A stretch of DNA of 64,000 nt from Octopus sinensis (taxonomy: Eukaryota). Every line of letters starts with the position of its first letter. Positions within the stretch are counted from its first letter, which is position 1. Location: positions 21,390,001-21,454,000 of the forward strand of contig NC_043018.1 of NCBI RefSeq assembly GCF_006345805.1, written 5' to 3'. Positions 11,105 through 20,793 of the stretch are shown piece by piece. The position numbers were made by a program, and so were the translations under genes. The notes beneath the pieces were generated by a model, which saw only the letters and a list, made by a program, of their open reading frames with translations, did no database searches and was not told the origin of the DNA.

Positions 11105-11159
11105 AACGCAGTATGTCCAACGCTAGGTCAGAAACAGACTATGATCGTTTGGATGGAAG
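11105..11159 (+). CDS. Knottin gene K1, exon 2 (propeptide ERSMSNARSETDYDRLDG-R)
   Basis: ttttcag| acceptor and GAAG|gtaaga donor; 55 nt, phase 1 to 2, open in frame with exons 1 and 3. Confidence 0.88.
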
Positions 11160-11523
11160 GTAAGAATTATATATTGACAATTGTTTGAGAATGGCATCAG
11201 TAATAGTAAAATAATTATGATAATTCTTTTCTTTTGTTATTCTATGTGTGTTTGTGTTAGGAAATGTCAAAGTAACTATCTGAAATATTTTCTGAATCTG
11301 TGAAAACGGAAAATGTTTTGTAAAATTGTTGTGGAAAGATTCAGCCATCCCACTCGTGACTAAAGATGGACTGACCCATTGTTATAAATTAAAGCTCTGT
11401 GAGCGATTGGCATTTCGGGTTGGTAAGCCGTTCACTATGAGCCGTGAGAGAGAGCGTTGCGTCTTGTAATAGTAGTGCATCGTGTAAATACTTCCTTTCT
11501 CCATTGCTTCGTTATATTATAAA

Positions 11524-11910
11524 AGCAGAATGTGTGCAGATTTTTCTACTGTTTTTAACGAATGTCTTAAAACGTGTTACTATCTGCTACCTGTCCCGGA
11601 GGATATCCTTGCGAAATTAAATGGTTTCAAGATATTGTCTAAAAAGGATCTTTCTGAAGCGTACCTACAAATTAGAGTAGACGATGAATGCTCTAAATAC
11701 TTAACAACGCACATAAAGGGCTGTATAAACACAACAGTTTGCCATTTGGCTTATAAGTAGCACCAGCGATTTTCAACAGATTATGTATGCAATATTTGCG
11801 GACTGTGAATTCGCAATTCCATATCGAGTGATATTCTTATTAAAAGCGAATCCAGGGATCAACACAAAGAGCACGTAAAATAAATATTCGAAAAAATTAA
11901 TCACTATAGC
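11524..11910 (+). mobile_element. Ty3/Gypsy LTR-retrotransposon RT fragment inside K1 intron 2
   Basis: RMCADFST...LPVPEDILAKLNG...KDLSEAYLQI..DDEC; frameshifted HKGLYK...LPFGL..APAIFQQIM. Confidence 0.85.
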
Positions 11911-12587
11911 CGTTGAGTGGTAATCAACACAAAGAGCACGTAAAATATATATTCGAAAAAATTAACCACTACGCCATATGCTCACGGGCATAGCCGTTGA
12001 GTGGTAATTCCCCAGAAGTAGAAGTAATCTACAAGGTAACATGTTTTCTTGGAGGACAAACTGATGAATCATTATTGTACTGAAAATCGATCCATTCAAA
12101 ATCAGTTACATACTTCAAATACACTCGTTCAGAAATATTAGGTCTATTTAGTATCAATATCGAAGTAAACTCGGAAGTGAAGAAAAATTATATATAGTGC
12201 TAAACGTAATTCATATTTTTCGGAATTATTACTCCTTGTGCAACATAATTGTCTAATTGGAAAATGCAACATGATTACACAGTATACTTGCTGAGTAGTA
12301 GAAATGAGGTTATAAATATCAAAATCATTTCTAATCTTAACTTCAAAGCAATCGAAATATTCGATGCCACTGCAGATGCAGAGGCAAATTTGGAAGCAAT
12401 AAAATGTCAACGCCAACTTTACAAAAAAATCTTCAGAAAATAATCTCACAGAAAATACCCCACATTTTAGAGAGACCGTATGTTAGAGGATGTAGATATA
12501 ATGTAGCTACAACATTCCTGGTGTATTAGGATTATGCAAGTTTCTAATTACGATGTTAATGTATTTTTCTGTTTTCTCTCTTTACAG

Positions 12588-12804
12588 GGGCAGATATAAG
12601 AGAAAGAGTACGTGCTTGAATTGGCAGATTCCATGTTACCCCAATAAGAGCAGTCCATCTAATAATTGTTGTAAAACTCAATCTTGTGCATGTAACCTCT
12701 TATGGCGTGACTGTTTATGTACAGACACAGTTTCAACAGCAAAGATTGTAATACATAATTATATATGTTTATATATATGTTTGTTAGCTTTTTTTTACCT
12801 CTAG
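12588..12804 (+). CDS. Knottin gene K1, terminal exon A: GRYKR + 8-Cys ICK/agatoxin-like peptide + hydrophobic tail
   Basis: tttacag| acceptor, phase 2. Translation GRYKRKSTCLNWQIPCYPNKSSPSNNCCKTQSCACNLLWRDCLCTDTVSTAKIVIHNYICLYICLLAFFYL*. Spacing C-x6-C-x10-CC-x4-CxC-x6-CxC; spliced precursor 112 aa. Confidence 0.9.
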
Positions 12805-13109
12805 TATGGACATGTTCTTTCTAAGTGGTTGGAGATTATTCTAATTCACATAAAAATAATAAAATAACAATTAAATTACAAAGTGAAGACTCAAGAATAT
12901 GTTTGCGTTCATTCGACATATGTTGGTATATAAACGTTTGTTTGCGTAAATCGTAATAAACAGGTTCGCACATAAAGATTCGTCGTGTAATCCATATTTA
13001 TATATATAAATGCGTTGTAGTGTGCACAAAACAAAGATTCTTCTTTGAATGCAACGTTTTGTAGTTCCCTCGTTACGTCCGTAGTATCAAGTGACAATGC
13101 TTGGCTTGT

Positions 13110-13346
13110 GTTATTATCAAGTCAAAATTTTAATATTCGCTATCAAATGTCAATGATATAATGAAGATTACATAGGTGGAAGTTTACTCTAAGAAATAGA
13201 CTGACCATTTACGGAAAACAAATACTAGACCCCAGTACTAGACAGATTCCACTGAGTGGTCACAATAGACATATGTGCAAAAAATAAGTCCCCCAAATTC
13301 CAGGTATTCCCACTCTACCTATATTCCGCGAATACCACAGATGAAG
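13110..13346 (+). mobile_element. Penelope-like GIY-YIG fragment
   Basis: Frameshifted ...EDYIG...TLRNRLTI..KQILDPSTRQIPLSGH...CAKNKSPKFQVFPLY, homologous to the 6.4-6.6 kb copy. Confidence 0.8.
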
Positions 13347-17880: not shown

Positions 17881-17898
17881 CTTCTTCTTATTATTATT

Positions 17899-17978
<80 letters not shown>

Positions 17979-17989
17979 GAACGACTCTC

Positions 17990-18300
17990 GGATAGTTCTT
18001 AATTACCGGCTATTCTTTACTTGAAAGCAGGCAATGACAAATCACCAAAGGTTTCAAGTAGTGCCTTCTCCTGTGACTCAAAGAGACAATACTCTCCTTA
18101 GAATGCGAGCTGTACCCAACAAAGATCACTTCTGAATCACCTCGAGCCTGACAGCAGCTCCAATATTCTTGATATATTTTTTAAAGCCCTTGGAAACTGC
18201 TCCTAAAGCTCCAATTACCACCGGTATCGTCATTACTTTCTTCATGTCCCATAACTTTCCTATCTCGTCCCGTAGTGACTGGTATTTCTCATCCTCTTCT
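17990..18300 (-). mobile_element. Third R4/Dong-clade 3' end
   Basis: EKYQSLRDEIGKLWDMKKVMTIPVVIGALGAVSKGF...LEVIQK..LLGTARILRRV. Confidence 0.8.
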
Positions 18301-20570
18301 GTTTCCTTGCATTTCCTCCATACTCTTTACTCTTTTATTTGTTTCAGTCATATGACTGTGGCCATGCTGGAGCACCGCCTTTAATCGAGCAACTCGACCC
18401 CGGGACTTATTCTTTTTTGTAAGCCCAGTACTTATTCTATCGGTCTCTTTTGCCGAACCGCTAAGTAACGGGGACATAAACACACCAGCATCGGTTGTCA
18501 AGCAATGCTAGGGGGACAAACACAGACACACAAACACACACAAATATATATATATATACATACATATATACGACGGCCTTCTTTCAGTTTCCGTCCACCA
18601 AATCCACTCACAAGGCTTTGCTCGGCCCGAGGCTATAGTAGAAGACACTTGCCCAAGATGCCACGCAGTGGGACTGAACCCGGAACCATGTGGCTGGTAA
18701 ACAAGCTACTTACAACACAGCCAATCATGCGCCATGTATATTTTCGTTGTGTAATGTTCTGATTTTCTTAAAACCTTCTTAAAATATTTTTACATAATAT
18801 TTGGGTCTACTTCTTATTTATGAGGAATTATCTTAGATGGTTATTCTACTTCAATTTATTGGTGTCTGATTGTTGTATGTATTTAGATATTTAGCCAAAT
18901 TCATTTAAAACTGAATGCTTTACTCATATCGTCCTGGATCTTCTAATCCCCGTTTTTCTTCTGATATATATATATATATATATATATAATTAGGCTGGTT
19001 TGCCATTAAAAATGTCGAAACAATGCATTGTCTAAAGATGAATAGGGTAAATGTTTTTTAATTTTCCTTTAATTTCTGAATTACTACTACTTGGCGGTTT
19101 GAGTCCTGGCTGCTCTTTCTAGTGGGTTGAATGGCCTATCGAGGCCTTTCCTCAATTGTTGTTGAATATATATATATATATATACACACATACAATACAT
19201 ATAAAGAATCCTCCTTAACATGATTTGATCCGCGCGTACTCCGATCATCCATGAAGAACTGGCTTTCTTTCGCTATCTTATCTAAATTTACAGGGGCCAT
19301 AAATTGCTATTACCTGGATCTCTGTTTTGATTTTAACGTTGATTTACTGTTACTTTATTGCTTTTTATAACGATTTTCGTTCGTCTTTATATAGCTATAG
19401 TATTTTTATATTTATTTTTTTCTATGCGCCCTTTTCAAGCATAACCAGGCTCATGGGCCCGGTTTCCCAGTTTCTATGGCGTATGTGTTCCCCGCAGCTG
19501 GATGGGACGCCAGTCCATCGCAGTGTTACTCAAGAAACAGGAAGAAATAGTGAGAGAAAGTTGGGGCGAAAGAGTACAACAGGGGTCGCCAGCACTCCCT
19601 GCCGGAGCCTCGTGTAGCTTTAGGTGTTTTCGCTCAATAAACGCACACAACACCCGGTCTGGGAATCGAAACCGCGATCCTCCGACCGCGAGTCCGCTGC
19701 CCTAACCACTGGGCCATTGCATTTCCACATGAGCCCTTTTAAAGTCTAGCCAGGCTCATCGGCCCGGTTTCCCGGTTTCTATGGCGTATGCGTTCTCCAG
19801 CTTGATGGGACGCCAGTCCATCGCAGCGTTACTCATTTTTGCCAGCTGAGTGGACTGGAGCAACGTGAAATGAAGTGTTTTGCTCAAGAACACAACGAGT
19901 CGCCCGGTCCAGGAATCGAAACCACAATCTTACCATCATGATGCTGACACCCTAACCACTAAGCCACGCGCCTCCACAATAGCTGTACTATAGCTACTAT
20001 ATACCATAAGGCGGCGAGCTGGCAGAAACGTTAGCACGCCGGGCGAAATGCGTAGCCGTATTTCGTCTGCCGTTACGTTCTGGGTTCAAATCCGCCGAGG
20101 TCGACTTTGCCTTTCATCCTTTCGGGGTCGATAAATTAAGTACCAGTTACGCACTGGGGTCGATGTAGTCGACTTAATCCGTCTGTCTGTCCTTGTTTGT
20201 CCACTCTGTGTTTAGCCCCTTGTGGGTAGTAAAGAAATATACTATATACCTATTTCTTTATTACCCACAAGGGGTTAAACACAGAGGGGACAAACAAGGA
20301 CAGACATAGCTATTAAGTCGATTACTTCGACCCCAGTGCGTAACTGATACTTAATTTATCGACCCCGAAAGGATGAAAGGCAAAGTCGACCTCGGCGGAA
20401 TTTGAACTCACAACGTAACGCAGACGAAATACCGCTAAGCATTTCGCCCGGCGTGCTAACGTTTCTGCCAGCTCGCCGCCTTTCATCTATACTATATACC
20501 TGGTGTCCTAAAATTTCTTAAAATTTCTAATTAAGCTTGTTATGTAGAGCTCTCTTTTCTCCATTTACAG

Positions 20571-20793
20571 AAGCGGACAAAAGAGACACGCCAAGTGTAA
20601 AAAGTGGACATGTCATATGCCGCATGATAAATGCTGTGACGGTAAAGTTTGTTCCTGTAAAGGCCCGTGGCACGGCTGCAAGTGTAGAGGAAGACATCCG
20701 AGTTACGCAATAGTTGCAATGCATAGTTACATATGTATACGTATTTGTTTGTTAACATTTCTTTTCCATGTAGTATGGACCTTTTACATGTAG
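20571..20793 (+). CDS. Knottin terminal exon B (probable alternative last exon of K1): SGQKR + 8-Cys ICK + hydrophobic tail
   Basis: ctcttttctccatttacag| acceptor, phase 2. Translation SGQKRHAKCKKWTCHMPHDKCCDGKVCSCKGPWHGCKCRGRHPSYAIVAMHSYICIRICLLTFLFHVVWTFYM*. Not in the ORF track because it has no upstream start. I found no dedicated signal or 55-nt exon between 12.8 and 20.5 kb. Confidence 0.85.

Follow-up and report, generated by a model that had tools for sequence, protein, structure and literature searches.

This report concerns a cluster of genes for short cysteine-rich peptides of the knottin type in Octopus sinensis, and in particular two of its terminal exons, here called A and B, which lie downstream of a single cassette of signal-peptide and propeptide exons. 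The sequence analysed (referred to throughout as the window) is a stretch of 64 kb, CM016880.1:21390001-21454000 of assembly GCA_006345805.1 (with which it agrees at 100% identity), so that window position 1 corresponds to 21,390,001. A six-frame cysteine-pattern scan of the whole 64 kb located four knottin-type terminal exons (A, B, K2 and K3), as against three signal exons and three 55-nt exons; K1 (which ends in exon A), K2 and K3 are complete three-exon genes, and exon B is the terminal exon that remains, lacking a cassette of its own. The three complete genes share a common plan, in which a signal exon ending in phase 1 is followed by a 55-nt propeptide exon and then by a terminal exon, the first base of which completes an Arg codon and is followed by x-x-K-R and the eight-cysteine peptide. 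All of the 55-nt exons end in AG and all of the exons that follow them begin with A or G, which results in an Arg codon split in phase 2. A first-pass annotation of this DNA, made from the sequence alone, had read exons A and B as alternative last exons by which one promoter makes two very different knottins.

As regards the immediate splicing context, the donor that follows K1 exon 2 (ggaag/gtaaga, after 11159) faces two possible acceptors downstream, one before exon A (tttacag/G, before 12588) and one before exon B (tttacag/A, before 20571), the ttacag of the latter being conserved with Octopus bimaculoides. The peptide encoded by exon A includes the stretch ...KSTCLNWQIPCYPNKSSPSNNCC..., with loops x6/x10, while that of exon B reads R-SGQKR-HAKCKKWTCHMPHDKCCDGKVCSCKGPWHGCKC..., with loops x4/x6. 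If K1 exon 2 is joined to exon B the product remains in frame (...DYDRLDG-R-SGQKR-HAKCKKWTCHMPHDKCCDGKVCSCKGPWHGCKC...), with AG/A forming the split Arg codon and the KR site retained, and a poly(A) hexamer, ATTAAA, lies 44 nt past the exon B stop. What the first-pass annotation had said of the open reading frame (ORF) of exon B, of its acceptor and of its phase relative to K1 exon 2 was correct in every coordinate and sequence statement, and the contrast in loop lengths that it drew between the two products is borne out by the peptides themselves.

The absence of 5' exons for B was approached in several ways. The K1 signal exon is the single copy of its type in the window (it matches the signal exons of O. 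bimaculoides A and B at 64/67 nt), and neither blastn nor tblastn with the O. bimaculoides exon peptides revealed any further exon of the K1 signal or 55-nt type in the 64 kb. Scans between 12.8 and 20.57 kb for hydrophobic exons beginning with ATG and having a phase-1 or phase-2 donor, and for internal exons resembling the 55-nt type, returned one weak candidate only, at 17346-17404 (MVFLPFVSGFAFIIPTYCP, with donor AAT/GTAAAT and a phase compatible with B, lying inside repeat sequence); this was rejected as an upstream exon for B, being repeat-like, having a weak donor and having no homologue among the signal exons of the family. The earlier statement that B has no signal or 55-nt exon of its own between 12.8 and 20.5 kb accordingly withstood blastn, tblastn and the splice-site and ORF scans alike. 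Two trivial causes can be set aside: an assembly gap is ruled out, the window being free of N from 4.05 to 64 kb, and relocation of the 5' part of B to some other place in the window is rejected, since the corresponding O. bimaculoides segment matches only the paralogous 5' region of K1, at 72-78%.

That exons A and B arose by duplication, as had been supposed, was confirmed by blastn, which aligned 12508-12962 with 20490-20934 at 65% identity (E=1e-41) across the intron end, the exon and the 3' flank. A further piece of evidence had been overlooked by the earlier annotation, namely a copy of the initial ~85-200 nt of K1 intron 2 at 15055-15138, beginning exactly at the end of a short interspersed nuclear element (SINE). 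Its presence in the B region implies that the duplication covered more than the terminal exon, and the claim can be extended to a tandem duplication of the whole gene.

A related species served for comparison. A protein profile search matched octopus proteins only, namely P0001 (O. sinensis LOC118767484, which includes K2 exactly) and five proteins of O. bimaculoides. Among the latter, LOC128250515 (P0002) is the orthologue of A, with 82% amino acid identity, LOC128250512 (P0004) that of exon B, with 68%, and LOC128250511 (P0005/8/9) that of K3. The gene order at the O. bimaculoides locus (designated L001) is the same as that in the window, A(+), B(+), K2(-), K3(+), and there the 5' exons of B sit between the A and B terminal exons. 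The signal peptide of P0004 is identical to that of P0002, while its propeptide differs (DRSMFDDLSEADDRLER), and its exon 2, of 52 nt, is flanked by intact splice sites (ag/.../gt). Since its own signal exon, exon 2 and terminal exon could all be mapped on L001, B in O. bimaculoides is a complete and separate gene. Every other member of the family, in both species, likewise has its own cassette, and the annotated isoforms differ at their 5' ends only, there being no alternative terminal exons among the annotated isoforms of the O. bimaculoides members. A gene built from the outset with one promoter and two terminal exons is thus not what the comparison reveals.

When the two loci are compared at the nucleotide level they are collinear, at 86-92% identity, with further orthologous blocks (beyond those listed in Table 1) running through the intron of B, and this collinearity is interrupted only where L001 7932-14946 stands opposite window 13046-15054. 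The interrupted O. bimaculoides segment comprises the region upstream of B, its signal exon and its exon 2, together with some N gaps, and nothing in the window is orthologous to it; some 7 kb of O. bimaculoides sequence is thus opposed to about 2 kb of transposon debris in O. sinensis. This filler contains a gag-like fragment and SINE copies (Table 1), of a type with at least 10 copies in the window, as well as microsatellites. In the alignment across the right-hand junction (alignment A3) the O. sinensis sequence resumes within the B intron at TATATTGACAATTG, roughly 10 nt past the GT of the donor, with the head of the SINE directly to its left, and the intron stretch that starts at 15055 has derived bases in common with the B intron of O. 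bimaculoides.

Table 1 Features of the O. sinensis window and of the corresponding O. bimaculoides locus. CDS, coding sequence; UTR, untranslated region; a slash marks a splice junction.
Feature	Window	L001	Strand	Remarks
K1 signal-peptide exon CDS	10076-10142		+	MRRTLALLCIGVLISCTSSQKQ plus 1 nt; phase 1; donor AAG/GTAAAT
K1 55-nt propeptide exon	11105-11159		+	E-RSMSNARSETDYDRLDG-R; ends AG (phase-2 Arg split); single copy in window
K1 intron 2, start	11170-11253		+	Paralogous to 15055-15138, 84.5% over 84 nt (blastn and alignment)
K1 terminal exon A CDS	12588-12804		+	GRYKR; 8-Cys knottin; hydrophobic tail; TAG 12802-12804
A 3' flank/UTR	12805-12962		+	AATAAA 12858 and 12955, ATTAAA 12870; homologous to B 3' flank
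Filler	13046-15054			No L001 counterpart; in place of B promoter, signal exon and exon 2
Filler: gag-like fragment	13256-14123			Frameshifted; CCHC zinc knuckle CHQCLKRGHIMKNC (ORFs)
Filler: partial SINE	14508-14651		+	
Filler: SINE	14779-15054		-	Head adjoins retained intron
Retained 5' part of B intron 2 (orthologous block)	15055-15511	14947-15821	+	92.5% and 87.7% identity; starts ~10 nt 3' of expected exon-2 donor
Species-specific repeat insertions in B intron	19388-20490			Orthologous blocks on either side are only 157 nt apart in O. bimaculoides
Terminal exon B CDS	20571-20793		+	R-SGQKR; 8-Cys knottin (loops x4/x6); hydrophobic tail; TAG 20791-20793; acceptor ctctcttttctccatttacag
B 3' flank	20794-20934		+	Homologous to A 3' UTR; sole poly(A) hexamer ATTAAA 20837; long CATA-type microsatellite next
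Orthologous block	8000-12988	713-7931		
Orthologous block	20490-21027	18103-18620		
Orthologous block	22105-22966	18583-19437		
O. bimaculoides A		Signal CDS start 2764; exon 2 4069-4125; terminal 7523-7741	+	Protein mapping
O. bimaculoides B		Leader 10001-10024; signal 13491-13574; exon 2 14884-14937; terminal 18172-18378	+	Protein mapping
K2 (LOC118767484), exons	Signal 33316-33247; 55-nt 28435-28381; terminal 26331-26076		-	Complete member, reference
K2, whole span	26076-33316		-	
K3, exons	Signal 41817-41877; 55-nt 45731-45785; terminal 51345-51537		+	Complete member
K3, whole span	41817-51537		+	

Because B is complete in O. bimaculoides, and because orthology is broken at a SINE, the single cassette is best understood as the result of a deletion: the one-cassette layout of the O. 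sinensis assembly reflects the loss of the 5' half of B. The proposal of one cassette serving two terminal exons therefore stands in part, in that this assembly does have a sole cassette upstream of both exons and an in-frame join between it and B is possible, but it fails as a description of the native gene design, and we infer that the layout is an accident of deletion rather than a designed alternative-last-exon gene. K1-A and B are tandem paralogues in an octopus cluster of four genes for knottin peptides of the CCWamide/agatoxin-like type, and their ancestral state was a pair of complete three-exon genes (signal, ~55-nt propeptide, terminal knottin). In the O. sinensis assembly the B copy has been deprived of ~7 kb that held its promoter region and its signal and propeptide exons, ~2 kb of retroelement and SINE sequence now lies in their place, and the right breakpoint falls ~10 nt past the former exon-2 donor. 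The terminal exon has been left an orphan, although it is intact and retains an acceptor and an ATTAAA signal. Given that the ORF and all eight cysteines survive, this loss was probably recent in evolutionary terms. The case provides a caution against inferring gene design from a single assembly.

As to the present state of exon B, we lean slightly towards the view that it is silent, or that K1 includes it in no more than a minor isoform arising by read-through. The polypyrimidine tract before exon A is the better of the two (19/22 pyrimidines, as against 16/22 for B), and exon A also has two AATAAA signals, implying that B would at best be a minor product. No transcript or protein corresponding to B was found in the searchable collections, but this says nothing as to whether B is silent, because K1-A and K3 are equally absent from them; the canonical octopus CCWamide-like protein, for its part, has no source in Logan (assemblies of public sequencing runs). 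The NCBI annotation of the window between 16 and 46 kb contains only K2, with no gene over B.

The pattern of divergence between the two species bears on the same point. For the whole exon, B has a ratio of nonsynonymous to synonymous substitution rates (dN/dS) of 0.9, compared with 0.54 in A and 0.41 in K2, and when changes are polarised B has 20 on the O. sinensis branch as against 7 on the O. bimaculoides branch, the figures for A being 11 and 7. The coding block of B also differs more than would be expected from its flanks, with 30 differences in 198 nt where 19.7 were expected (P=0.018). Positive selection on B, as one possible reading of this faster change, was not adopted, since counts are small and 14 of the 30 differences are clustered within 36 nt. 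This cluster (20662-20698) covers the Cys6-Cys7 loop and the sequence just after Cys8 (GGAAGACATCCG vs GACGCAGATTCG), and it looks like the product of one or two complex mutational events or of a small conversion tract.

There are, however, several observations that weigh against a recent deletion having left exon B silent or nearly so, and these need to be taken together. Exon B has suffered no stop codon, frameshift or loss of cysteine, and it still has its KR site, acceptor and poly(A) hexamer; if 15-20 lineage-specific changes are placed at random, the probability that both the ORF and the cysteines would remain intact is only about 0.10-0.04, making their retention improbable under long neutral decay. 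Within exon B, dN/dS is 0.38 for the knottin core and 2.1 for the tail, albeit on small counts. Taken by themselves, the intact ORF and cysteines point mildly to continued use or to recent loss, and in combination with the core dN/dS they would fit continued use (for instance by splicing from K1 exon 2) just as well as a very recent loss. The evidence for the deletion itself also comes from one assembly, of one individual, and the left breakpoint is obscured by N gaps in the O. bimaculoides sequence.

Much of this could be accommodated if exon B has been captured by its neighbour, that is, if K1 transcripts read through the poly(A) sites of exon A and are spliced from the donor at 11159 to 20571, giving two knottins from one cassette. 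We regard this as possible, if on the whole unlikely. The two partners are on the same strand and in identical phase (AG/A = Arg), the product would contain the KR site, the B acceptor is strong and is conserved with O. bimaculoides, and no other usable upstream exon emerged from the scans; neighbouring introns also cover a range of sizes that takes in the implied 9.4 kb (K3 intron 2, for example, is 5.6 kb), and the low core dN/dS and improbable retention of ORF and cysteines would find a ready explanation. Counting against it are the preference that the better acceptor and canonical AATAAA signals of the proximal exon A would be expected to enjoy, the dN/dS values of B outside the core and over the exon as a whole, the lack of any annotated gene over B or of any B transcript in the searchable collections (where, again, K1-A is no better represented), and the fact that the layout is not conserved, B having its own cassette in O. 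bimaculoides. Repeats have moreover accumulated in the would-be intron, including an inverted pair of 230 bp situated 85 nt from the acceptor. Sharing of the K1 front end by B is thus possible, though the gene did not start out in that form. We would consider it doubtful, yet by no means far-fetched, that an alternative-last-exon gene has been born here, through a deletion after which the intact B knottin exon came to be read from the promoter, signal and propeptide cassette of K1; were this true, one locus would secrete, or tether to the membrane by way of the hydrophobic tail, two very different CCWamide-like knottins.

It is also conceivable that the deletion is not a property of the species at all, and that real chromosomes, or other haplotypes, retain the 5' exons of B, the filler at 13.0-15.1 kb being a misjoin or a structural polymorphism. 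The junction does lie among SINE copies that are nested and inverted, an arrangement easily misassembled, only a single assembly is available as a basis, and an intact exon B is just what one would expect of a functional, complete gene. Nevertheless, the assembly is unbroken by N from 4.05 to 64 kb, the flanking orthology is clean right up to the breakpoint, and had tandem paralogues simply been collapsed, exon A would be missing rather than the 5' half of B, all of which makes an assembly error improbable. Less probable by far is that B is expressed from some new, non-homologous upstream exon, for instance one derived from a transposon, located within 13-20.5 kb or beyond K1. The weak candidate at 17346-17404 described above is compatible in phase with B and is the one point in favour of such an arrangement, but the sequence around it is repeat-like, its donor is weak and it resembles no signal exon of the family, and the scans gave no other candidate.

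Turning to the identity of these peptides, their closest described relatives appear to be the CCWamide or agatoxin-like peptides (ALP). Precursors of this kind, which occur in protostomes, are short and consist of a signal peptide, a non-conserved propeptide, a basic cleavage site and a C-terminal Cys-rich peptide, the latter having eight cysteines, an aromatic residue between Cys6 and Cys7, and an amidated aromatic C-terminus; their genes have three exons, the first encoding the signal peptide and the last the mature peptide, with a phase-2 last intron that splits a basic-residue codon (Thiel et al. 2021, PMC8557429). The octopus genes agree with this description in most respects. K1-A, K2 and K3 encode short precursors with signal, propeptide and basic site (B itself having only the KR site and the peptide), the eight cysteines and a Trp between Cys6 and Cys7 are invariant in nine sequences, there are three coding exons in K1, K2 and K3 of the window as well as in P0002, P0003 and P0004 of L001, and the last intron in the window genes is of phase 2 and splits an Arg codon. 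They differ in that A, B, K2 and K3 lack the aromatic-Gly ending required for amidation, whereas the canonical octopod relatives P0011 and P0012 end in Gly; in that the chains of K1-A, B and K2 are prolonged by a hydrophobic segment of some 20-30 residues, predicted to be helical; in that loop lengths vary, from x4-x6 to x6-x10; and in that they form a lineage-specific tandem cluster, apart from the canonical octopus CCWamide-like gene. The cluster would thus seem to be not canonical CCWamide but an octopod variant that has diverged within the CCWamide/ALP kind, and it represents an uncharacterised, octopus-specific expansion of that family; a literature search found no published description of these octopus peptides or genes.

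Searches with profiles lead to much the same picture. Against the Pfam family Toxin_9 (PF02819, the spider toxin or agatoxin type), for which the gathering score is 21.3, K2 and P0003 score above the cut-off (23.6 and 22.2 bits respectively) and K3, K1-A and B below it (17.2, 14.3 and 9.9). An exhaustive profile search of 1.84 billion representative proteins recovered only the octopus paralogues and three more distant precursors, at E ~1e-4; two of these three come from octopods, P0012 (O. vulgaris CAI9738757 / O. bimaculoides LOC106867751) and P0011 (from Argonauta hians), and their peptides have a Gly end and the motif CKCN-x-x-W-x-NCRC. The core pattern of the window peptides, C-x4/6-C-x6/10-CC-x4-C-x-C-x6/7-C-x-C, is compatible with the disulfide connectivity I-IV, II-V, III-VI of the inhibitor cystine knot. 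An AlphaFold 2 model of B has a mean predicted local distance difference test (pLDDT) score of 74 and contains a hairpin (26-28/37-39); the top Foldseek matches in the PDB were all knottins, though none of them was significant (E >=0.9), and a sequence profile run against the PDB gave weak matches to spider toxins only, the best having E=0.02.

A hydrophobic tail continues past the eighth cysteine in A (12730-12801), B (20698-20790) and K2 (26190-26079, minus strand), and is conserved among them (e.g. IVIHNYICLYICLLAFFYL). The same tail is found in the O. bimaculoides orthologues of K1-A, B and K2, and is lacking in K3, where the terminal exon ends without it, and in the canonical CCWamide-like proteins. 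Since dN/dS in the tail is ~0.45 in A and K2, the tail is coding. AlphaFold models it as a helix of 29 residues with pLDDT 85-91, and it could serve as a membrane anchor, a glycosylphosphatidylinositol (GPI) signal or a C-terminal propeptide; the predicted helix at the C-terminus hints at knottins anchored in the membrane, an unusual arrangement if so.

Some comparison with better-known systems may be helpful here. In the calcitonin/CGRP gene one promoter and a set of shared signal and propeptide exons are used with alternative terminal exons to make different peptides. The resemblance to the present case is that A and B each have, in this assembly, an acceptor and a poly(A) hexamer downstream of one in-phase donor, and that they would give different mature peptides behind the same signal and propeptide. 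The difference is that the sister species does not have the K1/B layout, which came about by deletion of the 5' exons of the distal gene, and that at K1/B there is no sign of regulated choice. If B is spliced to K1, the locus would offer a parallel to calcitonin/CGRP in which the sister species is still in the two-gene state, and a dated comparative case of a peptide gene that acquired alternative last exons when one of two tandem duplicates was partly deleted. A second model is the 5'-truncated unprocessed duplicate pseudogene, which B resembles in deriving from a complete tandem paralogue and in that a repeat-associated rearrangement has deprived it of promoter, start codon and first coding exons, but from which it departs in that its remaining coding sequence has no stop, frameshift or lost cysteine. 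Lastly, the O-superfamily conotoxin genes of cone snails (Pfam Conotoxin, PF02950) are divided into signal, pro and mature exons, with a conserved signal and a hypervariable mature region. The octopus genes share with them a three-exon plan, a near-invariant signal exon and fast-diverging knottin loops, and K2 and P0003 fall just below the PF02950 cut-off; unlike the conotoxins, however, they have an eight-cysteine framework (C-C-CC-C-C-C-C) of the ALP type, and their similarity remains under the Pfam threshold.

A number of observations on individual members of the family may be added. In O. bimaculoides the coding sequences of the A and B signal exons (L001 2764-2830 and 13503-13569) are identical at 67/67 nt and their flanks nearly so; the rest of the two duplicated units are ~72% alike, and the knottin part ~57%. 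The identity of the signal exons points to gene conversion or to very strong constraint, as is seen in the conotoxin families. The B gene of that species has a 15-nt deletion just past its acceptor (L001 18172-18185 compared with window 20571-20600), which removes G-Q-K-R-H, so that its processing site would be R-R at the exon junction; O. sinensis B retains the ancestral x-x-K-R. The O. bimaculoides B model begins in a leader exon 3.5 kb upstream, which is spliced to a cattag acceptor a few nucleotides before the signal ATG (at 13491), and a similar acceptor-like cattag lies just 5' of the K1 ATG in the window (10058-10068). Since a leader exon exists, and since the cattag acceptor sequence before the ATG is common to O. 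bimaculoides B and window K1, the signal exon is probably not the first exon of the transcript.

A third paralogue of the K1/B type, LOC128250537 (P0007), occurs in O. bimaculoides ~7 Mb from the cluster (L003, CM046622.1:36407433-36430176). It has its own signal exon, and its exon 2 is closer to O. sinensis K1 exon 2 (84% at the amino acid level) than is that of O. bimaculoides A (74%); no orthologue of P0007 is present in the 64-kb window. Upstream of the B acceptor, by ~85 nt, is a near-perfect inverted pair of SINE-like elements of ~235 nt (20003-20239 and 20251-20483), absent at the corresponding O. bimaculoides site; a pre-mRNA that crosses this pair could fold there into a long hairpin.

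As regards the neighbouring genes, K1-A and K3 look intact and have annotated orthologues in O. bimaculoides, but no O. sinensis protein in the collection corresponds to either, and both appear to be unannotated in this species. The NCBI model of K2 (186 aa) has 60 residues ahead of the signal peptide MNTVHVLCFF..., extending upstream to ~36261 on the minus strand, whereas its O. bimaculoides orthologue has the signal Met as its first residue. The choice of start codon in the NCBI model has probably turned leader-exon sequence into an artefactual extension. K3 intron 2 consists mostly of a (TATG)n microsatellite (47661-51089; 3.4 kb, 858 copies, 91% matches), which accounts for an extreme GC skew at 48-52 kb. 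The sole assembly gap in the window is a run of 100 N at 3950-4049, 6 kb upstream of K1. Finally, the segment 7300-7950, upstream of K1, is ~80% identical to 22409-22966, downstream of B, and the same is true in O. bimaculoides, which suggests that the unit of tandem duplication may have exceeded the genes themselves, or that a third, partial unit exists.

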